Below, piece after piece: positions 2,349-10,096 of a stretch of DNA of 12,725 nucleotides. Under the pieces are notes generated by a model. It saw only the letters and a program-made list of their open reading frames with translations, did no database searches and was not told the origin of the DNA. The position numbers were made by a program, and so were the translations under genes. The stretch spans positions 1 to 12,725 of the IMG/VR virus record IMGVR_UViG_3300033159_000018. One strand, given 5' to 3'. Within the stretch, counting starts at the first letter, position 1. Each line of letters opens with the position of its first letter.

Positions 2349-2847
2349 CAACTCCCACCTTCTCCATTATTTCTTTTTTCAAAAGCTCATAATCTTCAGG
2401 CTTCCAAACCTTAATTATGCTGTAGTGGTCTTTCTGACCTCTCTCGAACACGACGGGTTTGGGCAATTTAATTTTCACCGTACTTACTTTTTCCGCGGGA
2501 TATACATATTTTATAATAAGGTTCTGGTCGTCAAACTGTAAATCGTAGACCTTCTTGGGGAGGAAGAGTAAATTGGTCACGTTGTATGTACGTTCTTCTT
2601 TAGCTAATTTGACCACTATCTTTTCTGGAAACAGTAAAACGTTGTATATGCCCTTCTTTTTCACGTTTATTGTTACCGTAGTCCTGGATTTCCTTTTGGC
2701 TTCAGGGTCGTTGCAATCTGCTTGGTATAATTCGTAAACGTCATCTCCTATTTCCTTGACCTTATAGCACTCCCAGGGAAACGAATATATCTTGACGTCA
2801 TGGTTATGGGTCTTTACTCTCCTTATTTTTTTCTTGTAGCCTTTCAT
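2335..2847 (-). CDS. Hypothetical basic protein (170 aa), co-transcribed with the ATPase
   Basis: Long ORF with a TTTAAA box about 25-30 nt upstream (leaderless). It overlaps the ATPase start. Confidence 0.75.
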   Translation of the reverse strand: MKGYKKKIRRVKTHNHDVKIYSFPWECYKVKEIGDDVYELYQADCNDPEAKRKSRTTVTINVKKKGIYNVLLFPEKIVVKLAKEERTYNVTNLLFLPKKVYDLQFDDQNLIIKYVYPAEKVSTVKIKLPKPVVFERGQKDHYSIIKVWKPEDYELLKKEIMEKVGVDANK

Positions 2848-2955
2848 ATGTATAAACTTAGCATATTTGCTTTAAATTACTGAACTACATAACGCCCTTC
2901 CAAGACAACCGATCAAAAGTTAAATAAATATACTAACCTAATTAGATTGGTAACT

Positions 2956-3588
2956 ATGTTAGATAACCTTTCTCTCCTTTTAGAAAAATATTCCCCTGTC
3001 CGCTTAGAGGAGATGCGGGATTATCTAGCCAAACAATATGAGGAGAATTTGTTCGAGATATATTGGGGTATGCTGATGTTAGTCCTAAATGAAGATAAAG
3101 AGCCAGAAATACTCTCAAAAGAAGCTGAAAAAATAAGGAAAGATTTTGGATTTATGTTTGATGATGACGGGACTATAGAAGAATATGTTAATACGGTAAT
3201 GAACGGGTTACAAAAACTTATTGATGAATTAATGAAAAATGAAGAGGAGTTCTACAACGAGGCATTAAATTCCGATAACCCTAATTTCCTAATAACCACT
3301 TATTATTCGTTGTATTTACGCTTCGTAACAAAAGTATACTTAAAACTACAGACTGTCACAAAAACAACAAAAGATTCTAGGATTAAAGATATATTCAATA
3401 TCGCTAATTTTCTAGTAGGATTTTTCGGGATGCCTATATTACTCTATATAAAGAAAAAAGAAGTATTCCCTTATATATCTGAACTAAGCGTAGTATTATT
3501 ACACGCACTAGTTGCCGATAGGACACCTGTACCGTCGAAGGACTCCTTAGGATATTATCTATTTTTCAAGATCCACGGAAGGTGCTGA
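2956..3588 (+). CDS. Hypothetical alpha-helical protein (about 210 aa)
   Basis: Long ORF. The ATG at 2956 lies about 26-35 nt after TTAAATAAATA (2920-2930). Divergent from the 170-aa gene. Confidence 0.75.
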   Translation: MLDNLSLLLEKYSPVRLEEMRDYLAKQYEENLFEIYWGMLMLVLNEDKEPEILSKEAEKIRKDFGFMFDDDGTIEEYVNTVMNGLQKLIDELMKNEEEFYNEALNSDNPNFLITTYYSLYLRFVTKVYLKLQTVTKTTKDSRIKDIFNIANFLVGFFGMPILLYIKKKEVFPYISELSVVLLHALVADRTPVPSKDSLGYYLFFKIHGRC

Positions 3589-4257: not shown

Positions 4258-4437
4258 ATGGTGGAAACACAAATCGATGAGCAGAAAAAGATCCTGGAGA
4301 GGATGCATAGCAGAGTAGATTATATCATGAACGCTTACAAGGAATACCTAGACGCGTTAGCAGAGTATGACAGAACTGGAGTGTTGAAAATTCACGGAAG
4401 AGTTCTTTATGTAAAAGAACATAAAAACCAAGAGTGA
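4258..4437 (+). CDS. Small protein (59 aa), absent from the ORF track
   Basis: GGGG SD at 4247-4250 and ATG at 4258. Translates as MVETQIDEQKKILERMHSRVDYIMNAYKEYLDALAEYDRTGVLKIHGRVLYVKEHKNQE*. Confidence 0.75.
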   Translation: MVETQIDEQKKILERMHSRVDYIMNAYKEYLDALAEYDRTGVLKIHGRVLYVKEHKNQE

Positions 4438-4560: not shown

Positions 4561-4896
4561 ATGATTACCCAAAAAGAAATGGTTTCGGCAATTTATAACT
4601 GTGTTAAGAAACATGAAAAACACCTCGTAGACGAGAAGGCTTTTTTGATTTCTCTTTCTGTAGGAATCCCTATAGACGATTTTTACGAAATTGATGATCA
4701 CCTTACTTATCGTGGTCTGATAAACAGTTATATTGCTGACTGCGAAAGTTATTTGTCTACAATAGATAAATACGATGAGAAAACAGTTTTAGAGGCTTCT
4801 CTGCACATGTTTAACTTAATAAGGAGAGGAGTGCGTGGGAAGTTAAACGAGAAAGCCTCAAAATTGCTCTCGGAACTTAATATATTCCATGGATAG
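4561..4896 (+). CDS. Hypothetical protein (111 aa), paralog of 5474-5812
   Basis: Shares NC..H..H, AFLI, C..Y, YDEKT and KLLSEL with the 112-aa protein. Leaderless start after TTTATTTG (4532-4539). Confidence 0.8.
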   Translation: MITQKEMVSAIYNCVKKHEKHLVDEKAFLISLSVGIPIDDFYEIDDHLTYRGLINSYIADCESYLSTIDKYDEKTVLEASLHMFNLIRRGVRGKLNEKASKLLSELNIFHG

Positions 4897-5473: not shown

Positions 5474-5812
5474 TTAGACCTTAATACCCAGTTCAGATAA
5501 TAGCTTTTTCTCTCTATCGGTAAACTTCACTTCTTTATTAGCGTAATAATACCACAATTTAACGCTCACATCCCTAATAGTTTTTTCGTCGTAAGAAGAG
5601 AAGATCTTAACATATTGGCTACACTCACCTTTTGCGTCCTCTAATTTATCGAAATAAGCAACATAATCAGTATCAGGTGCGAAAAACTCTAAATCGTCCC
5701 CCTTAGCTGAAGCTATTAGAAAAGCCATTGAATTCACTAATTTATGATCGTTAAAATGCTCACTTAAACAGTTTATGTAGGAAGAAATCCTCCATCTATC
5801 GAGTGATAGCAT
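5474..5812 (-). CDS. Hypothetical protein (112 aa), paralog of 4561-4896
   Basis: Ungapped 49-residue alignment from AFLI to YDEKT with the 111-aa protein. Strong BRE/TATA and a GGGG SD. Confidence 0.8.
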   Translation of the reverse strand: MLSLDRWRISSYINCLSEHFNDHKLVNSMAFLIASAKGDDLEFFAPDTDYVAYFDKLEDAKGECSQYVKIFSSYDEKTIRDVSVKLWYYYANKEVKFTDREKKLLSELGIKV

Positions 5813-5819
5813 TTAAGGT

Positions 5820-5870
5820 TCCCCATTACACTCTTCTCGCAGAAGTATATAAACTTTCTGCACAACATGT
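5820..5870 (-). promoter_or_regulatory. Conserved strong promoter/leader cassette
   Basis: ATGTTGTGCAGAAAGTTTATATACTTCTGCGAGAAGAGTGTAATGGGGA, nearly the same as the cassette upstream of 6593. Confidence 0.75.
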
Positions 5871-5957: not shown

Positions 5958-6104
5958 TTAACCGTACGTTGCTTGCAAATAAGCAAATAGACCCTCGCAT
6001 TCCTCTTCGGAATGCGAGGGCGAATTGAAAAGAAAATAATATGTATCTGGGGAATAGCCCCGTAAATTATAATTGTTTTGCAATAATTCCAAACAGTTCG
6101 TCAT
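5958..6104 (-). CDS. Small protein (48 aa), absent from the ORF track
   Basis: Strong SD GAGGTGA overlaps the upstream gene's TGA. Translates as MTNCLELLQNNYNLRGYSPDTYYFLFNSPSHSEEECEGLFAYLQATYG*. Confidence 0.65.
   Translation of the reverse strand: MTNCLELLQNNYNLRGYSPDTYYFLFNSPSHSEEECEGLFAYLQATYG
5992..6020. repeat. 12-bp perfect GC-rich hairpin
   Basis: CCCTCGCATTCC-TCTTC-GGAATGCGAGGG, inside the 48-aa ORF. Confidence 0.7.
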
Positions 6105-6116
6105 TTGGGGCTCACC

Positions 6117-6593
6117 TCAGTGTTGAACTACCCATTCATCTTCTACTACAATATTTTTAACCCTAATTAAACCCTTATAAGCGGACACGCGGTAGGGTTC
6201 TCCATTCTTGGCTGGAGGGAGTATGACTCCCTCCAGCTTGGATTTCTTCAGTAATTCCTCAGCTTCTTGCCTCGAATTTGTAGTTCCCAAGCTCTCCATA
6301 TAAAATAATAGAACAGATTTGTGTAATTGCAAAAGTTGTACCTGGAACGGCAATGGAATTACACCAACAATACAATCGTACTGTGTAGTAAGTTTCTTCA
6401 GTTCATCTATGTTATTTGGCAGTGTGTCTATTTTATTTATATTAATGCACACTGTTGCTAAATCCTCTTGTTGCATCCTCAAAAGTTCGTGCCTGGTTAC
6501 TAGCAAGCAGTTCTGAAATTTCATAGGTTGGGATTGACCTGAACTTGAAGCTTGACCTGGAGTAGAGGTGTATTGACTTTGAATCTGTGCCAT
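6117..6593 (-). CDS. Hypothetical protein (158 aa), candidate Csx16/Csx20-like ring nuclease fold
   Basis: The gene itself is well supported by its promoter and SD GTGGGG. The motifs LLVTRH and DCIVGVIPL resemble Csx16 (FVSRH...GDxVIGTLP). The functional call is by eye only. Confidence 0.55.
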   Translation of the reverse strand: MAQIQSQYTSTPGQASSSGQSQPMKFQNCLLVTRHELLRMQQEDLATVCININKIDTLPNNIDELKKLTTQYDCIVGVIPLPFQVQLLQLHKSVLLFYMESLGTTNSRQEAEELLKKSKLEGVILPPAKNGEPYRVSAYKGLIRVKNIVVEDEWVVQH

Positions 6594-6599
6594 TTTTTA

Positions 6600-6650
6600 T
6601 CCCCACTATACTCTTCGCAGAATCGGTATATAAAGTTTTCTGCCTAACAT
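6600..6650 (-). promoter_or_regulatory. Conserved strong promoter/leader cassette
   Basis: ATGTTAGGCAGAAAACTTTATATACCGATTCTGCGAAGAGTATAGTGGGGA. Confidence 0.75.
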
Positions 6651-6690: not shown

Positions 6691-6708
6691 CTCAGACAGC
6701 TGTTTGAG
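6691..6708. promoter_or_regulatory. Palindromic operator variant CTCAGACAGCTGTTTGAG
   Basis: One mismatch, centred about 69 bp upstream of the TATA of the 6593 gene. Confidence 0.72.
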
Positions 6709-6767: not shown

Positions 6768-6791
6768 TCCCTCAAACAGCTGTTTGAGGGA
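6768..6791. promoter_or_regulatory. Palindromic operator TCCCTCAAACAGCTGTTTGAGGGA
   Basis: 24-bp perfect palindrome. Confidence 0.8.
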
Positions 6792-6881: not shown

Positions 6882-6913
6882 TGGAAGAATATACATTTGC
6901 TTCGTGCTGAATT

Positions 6914-7009
6914 CCTTCAATCCCTTTATGGATGCGATGGTGAAGGGGCATGTCTAAATTTAATTATGATGATACTTCCGTTTCCTTCAATCCCTTTTAC
7001 GGATGCCTC
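6914..7009 (-). CRISPR. Mini-CRISPR-like array (2 repeats, one 45-nt spacer), no cas genes in the window
   Basis: On the minus strand, R1 (7009-6984) is GAGGCATCCGTAAAAGGGATTGAAGG and R2 (6938-6914) is ATCGCATCCATAAAGGGATTGAAGG. Both resemble Sulfolobales 25-nt repeats (ATCCC-AAAA-GGGAT stem and ATTGAAAG 3' handle). The spacer is 6939-6983. Confidence 0.75.
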
Positions 7010-7113: not shown

Positions 7114-7695
7114 CTACCTCGGCTTTGCGAAAAAATCCAGGATACTGCTTTGCCTGCCGTGGGACTTACTTACCAGTTGCTGTATTTCTTTCAGTTTCCT
7201 CCTTATGTAATTGACGTCCTTTAACTGCTGAAATCTGCCGAGTAACATCAAAGTAACGTCTCCGTAGTCGAAAGAATAGAATAAGGCTTCTTTCAGCTCG
7301 TGCCTAGTAGAAATGCCAAGATACCAGTGCTGGTATTTAGACGCTTTAATGAAATCATGGATTGTATAGTCTCTGTACTTCGGATCAGACGCGTATCCTG
7401 CAATCACTTTATAGTTATTTTCCCTCAGCTTGTCGGCAATTTCTAGCTGGCTCAGGGTATGAATAGGGACAACGTAAGCTATGTTCTTTGGGACTGGAAG
7501 AACGTAATTAATATTGTCTGGGTATAACGCTACCTCTATCTTGTTTCTGTTAAACCAGAGTTCCCTCAAGTATTTCTTATAATTTCTCTCTATAAGCAAC
7601 GCCTTTTTGTTGTCAAAAAACCTGGGGTATATTATATAGCCAGTGACGTCTTGAAGCTTCTGAATTAGAGGGTTATAGCCTAATGCTAGAATCAT
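7114..7695 (-). CDS. Protein of about 193 aa with a C-terminal PIP box; possible divergent TGT/DpdA-like barrel
   Basis: The true start is likely the ATG at 7695 (SD GGGGG, TATA TTTAAATA at 7735-7728). The C-terminus QSSILDFF matches the PCNA-interaction consensus QxxIxxFF. Confidence 0.65.
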   Translation of the reverse strand: MILALGYNPLIQKLQDVTGYIIYPRFFDNKKALLIERNYKKYLRELWFNRNKIEVALYPDNINYVLPVPKNIAYVVPIHTLSQLEIADKLRENNYKVIAGYASDPKYRDYTIHDFIKASKYQHWYLGISTRHELKEALFYSFDYGDVTLMLLGRFQQLKDVNYIRRKLKEIQQLVSKSHGRQSSILDFFAKPR

Positions 7696-9772: not shown

Positions 9773-10096
9773 ATGAAAATAAAATTGAACCCCGAGATGA
9801 GTGTCGTAACCTTTAAGTTAGAGGAGGATCTACTCCAAAAACTCGATTTATATGCTATGAAGTCAGGGTTAACTAGAAGCGATGTGATTAGAGAAGCACT
9901 GGAATCCTATGATTGGGGGAATAAGAAGAAAATAATGCCAATTCGTATTCGTACGATAACAGTTAAACTGGAGGGGGAGTTATTGCAAAAGCTCGATTTA
10001 TACGCTGTGAATGCAAGGGTAACTAGAAGTCAGGTAATTAGAGAAGCTCTCAAACATTATCTATCCTCATTTGATGGTGAGGGCGGTGAGCAATGA
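9773..10096 (+). CDS. Tandem ribbon-helix-helix transcription factor, aCcr1/CdrS-like
   Basis: Two RHH units: [33 protein letters not shown] and [33 protein letters not shown]. The duplication is also visible at the DNA level. Confidence 0.88.

Follow-up and report, generated by a model that had tools for sequence, protein, structure and literature searches.

A viral gene family that takes the place of AcrIII-1 in Sulfolobales tailed-spindle viruses and may be a divergent branch of the Csx16/Csx20 ring nucleases

A gene slot shared with AcrIII-1

The window analysed here, by which we mean the whole 12,725-nucleotide (nt) stretch of DNA, is a bicaudavirus-like genome fragment of the Sulfolobales tailed-spindle virus type (IMG/VR contig 3300033159_000018). 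Its minus strand carries a gene for a 158-amino-acid (aa) protein, the target of this study, which a first-pass annotation had put forward as a viral ring nuclease resembling Csx16 and Csx20. The slot that holds the target gene, and that in a related virus holds the gene for AcrIII-1, comprises the following features.

6117–6593, minus strand: target coding sequence including the stop codon (ATG start, 158 aa; open reading frame (ORF) listing)
6594–6643, minus strand: promoter and 5′ untranslated region, with the B recognition element (BRE) and TATA box GCAGAAAACTTTATATACC (6624–6643) and, between these and the ATG, the conserved leader AAGAGTATAGTGGGGAT
6691–6708, no strand: palindrome CTCAGACAGCTGTTTGAG, a candidate operator, ~100 nt upstream of the ATG and kept in all orthologous loci except that of Acidianus tailed spindle virus (ATSV)
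6771–6788, no strand: second palindrome copy CTCAAACAGCTGTTTGAG, 80 nt further upstream
5958–6104, minus strand: 48-aa ORF (PHROG 11751), starting 12 nt after the target stop codon
7900–8196, minus strand: 98-aa gene (PHROG 13045), homologous to gp60 of Sulfolobus monocaudavirus 4 (SMV4) and forming the upstream border of the exchangeable slot

The ORF and the motif strings quoted in the first-pass annotation were found in the ORF listing as described, with LLVTRHELLRMQQEDL at residues 30–45, IDTLP at 55–59 and DCIVGVIPL at 73–81. The protein matched PHROG 31280 (E 1.2e-51), a group with no assigned function, and had close metagenomic homologues (n = 46) as well as orthologues in two isolated viruses, Sulfolobus monocaudavirus 3 (SMV3; gp69, 51% identity) and ATSV (A144, 43% identity), and we therefore regard it as the product of a real gene rather than of a chance ORF. 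PHROG 31280 was its sole family match, as no curated family model was matched. SMV3 gp69 (YP_009226292) has been listed as the predicted anti-defence gene (ADG) ADG.68, found via an early-gene regulatory motif, in an entry that assigns no function, fold or family and records two homologues, one of them with the regulatory motif (Bhoobalan-Chitty et al. 2024; PMC11065993). An orphan PHROG and the entry ADG.68 are thus the only earlier records of the family.

Searches (tblastn) with gp29 of the Sulfolobus islandicus rod-shaped virus SIRV1, an AcrIII-1 of the DUF1874 family, recovered homologues from many Sulfolobales viruses including SMV4, none from SMV3 or ATSV, and nothing credible across the loci that bear the target family. 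The two families were therefore complementary in these viruses, SMV3 and ATSV carrying only the target family and SMV4 only DUF1874. The DUF1874 gene of SMV4, gp61, is flanked by gp60, the homologue of the 98-aa gene (54% identity), and by gp62, the homologue of the 48-aa ORF (60%); beyond gp62 come counterparts of the window's ADG.17, 183-aa, 170-aa and 307-aa genes, 85–92% identical. Since two metagenomic loci (L020 and L021) have the gene order 98-aa gene, target, 48-aa ORF where SMV4 has gp60, gp61, gp62, the target is a one-for-one replacement of DUF1874 at this locus. The replacement is non-homologous: aligned with SIRV1 gp29 by hhalign, the family (alignment A3, described below) reached a probability of 0.1% for DUF1874 (PF08960), in agreement with the first-pass remark that the protein does not look like DUF1874.

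Upstream DNA is common to both occupants of the slot. The target genes and SMV4 gp61 share the palindrome AAACAGCTGTTT, a BRE and TATA element of the form GGCAGAA-TTTA(T/A)ATACC and the leader AGAGTATA; the BRE/TATA module is conserved ahead of SMV3 gp69, the metagenomic orthologues and the SMV4 AcrIII-1 gene. An inverted repeat, GCAGAA/TTCTGC, flanks the TATA box of the target, and inverted repeats around the BRE have been described for SMV-type promoters (PMC11065993). The early promoter proposed in the first-pass annotation is accordingly upheld, both by this conserved module and by the published prediction of the SMV3 orthologue as an early anti-defence gene, ADG.68 (PMC11065993). For SMV4 gp61, a start at an in-frame ATG further upstream, which keeps the conserved distance to the promoter, would add a tail of 19 residues, rich in Q/T/S/P and resembling the tail of the target; the annotated gp61 start (NC_029011, 8041–8097) is probably 19 codons too far downstream.

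The palindrome AAACAGCTGTTT, often extended to CTCAAACAGCTGTTTGAG, occurs 10 times in the window against 0.08 copies expected, with nine of the 10 copies intergenic (12-mer starts at 903, 4464, 5431, 5913, 6694, 6774, 7789, 9661, 10777 and 11217). Copies typically stand ~100 nt upstream of a start codon, and SMV3, SMV4 and the metagenomic relatives keep the palindrome at that position. It is probably the operator of a dimeric regulator. Downstream, a 47/48-aa ORF begins 12–24 nt after the target homologue wherever downstream DNA was available, and 14 nt after SMV4 gp61. This small ORF (mean column identity 78%), which is missed by metagenome gene callers, is a candidate operon partner or regulator of the anti-CRISPR-associated (Aca) kind. 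From the common upstream DNA, the flanking genes and the downstream 47/48-aa ORF, we conclude that AcrIII-1 and the target protein are alternative cargoes of a single regulatory and operon cassette.

A mobile-element family with distant likeness to Csx16 and Csx20

Among 35–38 close homologues, residues C29, R34, H35, Q41, D44, L58, P59, G77, P80 and R135 were invariant or nearly so. A profile of this close family retrieved 51 proteins, mostly of ~140 aa, from 1.8 billion representative proteins, and within the wide family, aligned as A3 (37 members) and A4 (61 members) at a mean identity of ~25%, only R34, H35, Q41, P80 and R135 stayed invariant or nearly so, P80 being the sole fully invariant column. 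The motifs singled out in the first-pass annotation are selected rather than accidental, with invariant or near-invariant residues in the close and the wide alignments alike. They map to the gene as follows.

6489–6497, minus strand: codons of T33-R34-H35, placed where beta1 ends C-terminally and proposed to serve catalysis or ligand binding, with R34 and H35 invariant or nearly so
6351–6365, minus strand: codons of G77-V-I-P80-L81 at the end of beta3, marked by the invariance of P80
6159–6323, minus strand: codons of residues 91–145, the beta4-alpha4-beta5-beta6 half with R135 (6189–6191), delimited by predicted secondary structure (AlphaFold2, AF2) and SPOR-type resemblance
6522–6593, minus strand: codons of residues 1–24, an N-terminal tail rich in Q/S/T, of variable length and with predicted disorder (AF2 and alignment)

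Divergent members were located on virus-like contigs that also carry genes for MoxR ATPase, VWA or Prim-Pol proteins, and one on a conjugative-plasmid-like contig with VirB4/TraG-type ATPases. No family copy was detected in representative archaeal genomes when searched with the member P0065, and a genome search with alignment A2 gave a single bacterial match, confined to residues 85–141 and probably a SPOR domain. The family proper is therefore confined to mobile elements, namely viruses and plasmids, and is not found in cas loci.

The AF2 model of the target had a predicted local distance difference test score (pLDDT) of 88 and a predicted template modelling score of 0.75, with pLDDT ~40 across residues 1–20, and the model of the relative P0053 reached a pLDDT of 96. 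After the tail, the predicted elements run b1-a1-b2-a2-b3-a3-b4-a4-b5-b6, giving six strands and four helices with a terminal beta-hairpin; strand b1 ends in the RH motif and strand b3 in the GxxP motif, such that conserved residues lie at C-terminal strand ends. CARF domains have a six-strand Rossmann-like sheet in which the last two strands form a hairpin. The predicted order of elements along the target chain, as distinct from strand order within the sheet, agrees with a Rossmann-like sheet that ends in a beta5-beta6 hairpin. Foldseek comparison with BFVD returned the ATSV orthologue and two 133-aa viral proteins. Sequence searches of the PDB produced only leucine-rich-repeat noise with the target alone and, with profiles A1 and A3, weak SH2-like and miscellaneous matches (E > 0.1) that we judged to be noise.

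Through residues ~84–140, the family profile also matched SPOR-repeat proteins (E 7.5e-7, three stretches), and the target protein itself gave no match to Pfam SPOR (PF05036) at E <= 10. Because Sulfolobales hosts have no peptidoglycan, SPOR membership was set aside, and the resemblance is treated here as that of a common beta-alpha-beta-beta module. This SPOR-like C-terminal half sets the target family apart from Csx16 and Csx20.

Likeness to these two families emerged when the 37 members of A3 were scanned against 5027 PADLOC defence models. Eight of the 37 had weak, co-linear hidden Markov model matches to Csx16 and Csx20. Nine models were matched at E <= 1, of which six were Csx16 (n = 3), Csx20 (n = 2) or a CARF-HEPN-Csx16 fusion (n = 1), and a further one was CARF9. 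The best Csx16 match was that of P0053 (21.8 bits, E 4.7e-5), limited to profile positions 34–74; in addition, four members matched Pfam Cas_VVA1548 (PF09652; best E 3e-4) and two matched TIGR02620. The b3-GxLP-a3 segment of the relatives aligned to Csx16 positions ~31–74, and their b1-RH...Q-a1 segment to Csx20 positions 1–51. The Csx20 matches concerned two of the 37 members, in stretches that include RH...Q: on the 128-position profile, residues 4–52 of P0089 aligned with positions 1–51 (E 0.0029) and residues 2–34 of P0059 with positions 2–34 (E 0.015), both below threshold, with the Csx20 motif taken as worded in the first-pass annotation. Taken together, the weak profile likeness of the relatives is suggestive of distant homology to Csx16 and Csx20.

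Csx16 and Csx20 were first predicted to be ring nucleases from conserved His, Arg and acidic residues (PMC8284326). A 2025 study (Hoikkala et al. 2025; PMC12409355) showed these mutually related, small, CARF-like proteins of type III loci to be ring nucleases specific for cyclic tetra-adenylate (cA4), with a common CARF-like fold of a five-stranded sheet flanked by helices; it also reports a phage collection with Csx16 in two genomes and Csx20 in four, and scant ring nuclease activity, if any, for Csx15, a member of the same predicted group. The two Csx16-bearing phage genomes may be SMV3 and ATSV, in which case the assignment would already be in print. In the type III region of the Thermus plasmid pTT27, neither Csx16 nor Csx20 is annotated, and the small hypothetical proteins encoded there were unlike them.

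The family profile, searched against the same 1.8 billion proteins, also found P0083 (233 aa; E 3e-5) and P0090 (401 aa), in each of which a related domain stands twice in tandem; every copy has [ST]-[RK]-H...Q and PV/LP motifs. Compared with the family by hhalign, P0083 reached a probability of 78% and P0090 of 87%, with the H, the Q and both P positions aligned. The gene for P0083 has the following setting.

2807–3508 of a Logan SRR32456876 contig (L026): P0083 gene, previously unannotated, between the gene for an 837-aa protein and cas10

Directly downstream of the P0083 gene, cas10 is followed by three RAMP genes, csx19 and cas1, which together make up a type III locus, and P0083 is itself a candidate for a new CRISPR-associated gene of the ring nuclease-like kind. 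A word-indexed search for homologues of P0083 retrieved P0083 itself and nothing else. Ring nucleases normally act as homodimers. The tandem forms P0083 and P0090 would be fused pseudo-dimers, consistent with a unit that normally works as a homodimer.

Proposed function and its alternatives

We give a probability of roughly 0.5 to the reading that the target is an early, dimeric and metal-independent anti-type-III protein that binds and cleaves cA4, and that it represents a divergent viral branch of Csx16/Csx20-like proteins. The signal molecule of Sulfolobales type III systems is cA4. A compact alpha/beta domain (residues 25–158) would form a homodimer, in which the loops after beta1 (T33-R34-H35 and Q41) and beta3 (G77..P80), together with R135 on the C-terminal hairpin, would make up the cA4 pocket. 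His35 and the arginines would catalyse a metal-independent attack of a ribose 2′-OH on the adjacent phosphodiester, and the linearisation of the cA4 ring would switch off effectors of the CARF type, for example Csx1. Dimerisation, ligand and catalysis are all elements that we infer. As His and Arg are catalytic in Crn4, and His (H47) in AcrIII-1 (PMC12830947), the invariant R34, H35, Q41, P80 and R135 would, by analogy, suit a ring nuclease.

Several results weigh against this reading. In searches of Pfam, NCBIfam and PADLOC, the target protein itself had no Csx16, Csx20 or CARF match at E <= 10. The relatives all fall far short of the curated Csx16 and Csx20 cut-offs, the matches are only 30–50 residues long, and the members that give them are akin to each other, so that the matches are not independent. 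For Csx16 in particular, both the target and the best relative, P0053, fall below the curated profile cut-off, the ~100-aa profile leaves no room for the SPOR-like C-terminal half, and the family proper is always in viral or plasmid-like settings, not in the type III loci that characterise Csx16. The CRISPR association rests on one locus, that of a very distant relative with no detectable homologues. Foldseek searches of the PDB with two models retrieved only generic Rossmann-type methyltransferases (template modelling score < 0.35, root-mean-square deviation > 10 Å), and no chain of Crn1, Crn2, Crn3, Crn4, Csx15, DUF1874 or CARF was among the top 50; as we know of no deposited structure of Csx16 or Csx20, this outcome neither confirms nor excludes the proposed kinship. 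Finally, positional replacement of AcrIII-1 is a better indicator of an anti-defence role than of an identical target, because a variable slot can hold inhibitors of different defence systems.

The first-pass proposal is thereby divided. Its likeness to Csx16 and Csx20 holds for the relatives, as weak and co-linear matches, and not for the target itself, nor at any curated threshold; the predicted structure is a confident alpha/beta fold, with no ring nuclease or CARF protein among its top 50 PDB matches. The broader idea, a second class of viral anti-CRISPR that degrades cyclic oligoadenylates (cOA), gains from the slot exchange with AcrIII-1, the strongest of our results, from the cas10-adjacent relative and from the published listing of the SMV3 orthologue as ADG.68, and loses by the failure to reach a family threshold.

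The slot exchange, being all that the target need have in common with AcrIII-1, would also be produced by an anti-defence protein that acts on another system or in another mode, for instance one that stoichiometrically inhibits a type I-A complex, a type III complex, a toxin-antitoxin module or some other Sulfolobales defence. The conserved promoter upstream and the 47-aa gene downstream, with unrelated genes in the slot across viruses, are in keeping with this, as are the listing of the SMV3 orthologue simply as an ADG with no function given, the presence of a gene directed against a toxin-antitoxin system (the ADG.17 homologue) only 1.7 kb away and the sub-threshold nature of the Csx16 and Csx20 matches. 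An invariant R-H pair, Q and R at strand ends are, however, the pattern of a small-molecule site rather than of a protein-mimicking surface; Csx16, Csx20 and CARF are the only defence families that the relatives match, and a distant relative adjoins cas10. We consequently hold an action on another system to be unlikely, if of some weight. A nucleotide pocket of the Csx16/Csx20 kind could also serve a cOA sponge, binding cA4 or another cOA tightly with no turnover, as has been considered for Csx15. The evidence for the pocket is the same, a strong early promoter suits a stoichiometric binder, and Csx15 showed scant ring nuclease activity, if any, when first studied (PMC12409355). A near-invariant His beside an Arg is nevertheless more typical of catalysis, as with H15 and R112 of Crn4 and H47 of AcrIII-1, and the gene that stands in the same place in SMV4 encodes an enzyme; a sponge is in our view improbable.

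Still less probable is the absence of any anti-defence role, whether the protein were a histidine-phosphatase-like phosphoesterase or a nucleotide-binding factor in replication or transcription, with the SPOR-like module binding some other polymer. A single family member matched SixA weakly (E 0.016), the Foldseek results pointed to a generic Rossmann-like fold, the C-terminal half resembles SPOR repeats, and replication-type genes (MoxR ATPase, Prim-Pol) lie near some distant relatives. Membership of the histidine phosphatase superfamily was rejected, as the residue after H35 is variable, where an RHG motif would have Gly, and no second, catalytic His is conserved across the family. A SPOR domain would find no peptidoglycan in Sulfolobales to attach to. 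The patchy occurrence of the gene in bicaudaviruses and its replaceability by AcrIII-1 mark it as dispensable and not core, and the published early-promoter prediction indicates anti-defence. A cA4-directed ring nuclease thus remains our preferred reading.

Neighbouring features and comparison with known systems

Upstream of the target, between its palindromes and the 98-aa gene, lies one further gene.

7114–7695, minus strand: 193-aa gene (PHROG 17844), present in the window, SMV3 and two metagenomic loci (L012 and L013), absent from L019–L021 and SMV4

Because of these absences, the 193-aa gene is optional and not an obligatory partner of the target. The annotated ORF of 236 aa begins too far upstream, as gene callers and the PHROG profile both start at M44. 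Despite a similar 'STRHEL' string, its product is unrelated to the target and was rejected as a paralogue; it has a weak similarity to OspC-family arginine ADP-riboxanases (Pfam E 0.011, PDB chain E 0.042), below threshold in both cases.

A 59-aa ORF (4258–4437, plus strand), 1.7 kb from the target, is 85–88% identical to SMV1 gp44 and SMV4 gp63 and belongs to the ADG.17 family of viral Phd-like antitoxins, which have been shown to counteract a Doc toxin of the host (PMC11065993). It is a second anti-defence gene in the window. Another copy of the promoter module, TTTATATAC..TCTGCGA(G)AAGAGT.TA.TGGGGA, occupies 5813–5870 on the minus strand upstream of a 112-aa ORF (5474–5812), which has a paralogue at 4561–4896 (plus strand) with common YDEKT and KLLSEL motifs. 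This ORF may be another early or anti-defence gene; homology of its product to SMV3 gp71 (ADG.69) was considered and was not detectable by BLAST. At 9773–10096 (plus strand), a gene with an internal 94-nt direct repeat (77% identity) encodes a 107-aa protein with two ribbon-helix-helix repeats (RHH_1, E 1.4e-14), which is a candidate binder of the dispersed palindrome.

The first-pass annotation had also placed the target gene beside a mini-CRISPR array. Two copies of TTCCTTCAATCCCTTT, at 6912–6927 and 6982–6997, do stand 70 nt apart ~320 nt upstream of the target, each followed by a similar ..GGATGC, in a region (6909–7007) within a 520-bp non-coding gap. Their reverse complement (..AAAGGGATTGAAGGAA) resembles the 3′ half of Sulfolobales CRISPR repeats. 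CRISPR identity found no support: Rfam had no CRISPR repeat family near the target gene, and a scan of IMG/VR for the 16-mer gave single chance matches only elsewhere. The pair may form a minus-strand mini-CRISPR array with a single spacer, of the sort reported in Acidianus two-tailed virus (PMC6858448). The repeats at 6691–6708 and 6771–6788 were rejected as CRISPR, being dispersed intergenic copies of the palindrome.

A wider picture, which we offer tentatively and at less than even odds, is that of an archaeal 'acr-aca-like' cassette made up of a palindromic operator, a strong early promoter, an exchangeable inhibitor and the conserved 47-aa gene. In such a cassette, a structurally distinct, hitherto unrecognised ring nuclease or sponge family would have replaced AcrIII-1, combining a Csx16/Csx20-like N-terminal half with a SPOR-like half and reaching conjugative plasmids and, as tandem pseudo-dimers, type III loci. 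The idea of viral ring nucleases of the Csx16 and Csx20 types is already in the literature; what is new here is the connection of an archaeal-virus and plasmid family with the Csx16/Csx20 group, the way in which this family exactly substitutes for AcrIII-1 and the cassette with its 47-aa partner. To our knowledge, AcrIII-1 is the only ring nuclease anti-CRISPR established for archaeal viruses. If the target does degrade or sequester cA4, Sulfolobales viruses would have evolved no fewer than two unrelated ways of countering type III signalling that swap at one locus, the orphan ADG.68 would gain a function, and a viral and plasmid branch would be tied both to the Csx16/Csx20 group and to a tandem protein, so far unannotated, of a type III locus. 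Few archaeal anti-CRISPRs are known, which leaves little bait for guilt-by-association searches, and the cassette of operator, promoter and 47-aa gene is practical bait for finding further archaeal counter-defence genes.

Among known systems, ADG.68 (SMV3 gp69) is the nearest, as an orthologue of the target at 51% identity with a conserved promoter. AcrIII-1/Crn2 resembles the target in slot, flanking genes, promoter, type of tail, downstream 47-aa ORF, small size and viral origin, yet has no sequence or profile similarity to it and differs in fold. In Crn4 (Unk01; PMC12830947), T13, H15 and R112 parallel T33, H35 and R135 of the target, as an N-terminal T-x-H and a C-terminal Arg. Crn4 is likewise small and borne by phages and plasmids, sometimes with N-terminal extensions, and is dimeric; it is, however, almost all-beta with one short helix, in contrast to the four helices on a six-strand sheet predicted for the target, and PDB sequence and profile searches produced no match to 9SMA, 9QS9 or 9R7B. 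Csx16 and Csx20 share with the target a small alpha/beta architecture, [ST]-R/x-H after the first strand with Q six residues on (the Csx20 motif as worded in the first-pass annotation) and a G-x-x-P/LP motif after a later strand. A distant tandem relative of the target stands in a type III locus, and homologues of Csx16 and Csx20 are reported from a few phage genomes in the 2025 study cited above. Unlike Csx16 and Csx20, the target has a longer core (134 aa against profiles of ~91–128 positions), a disordered N-terminal tail and a SPOR-like half, and its family resides on archaeal viruses and plasmids only, rather than in cas loci.

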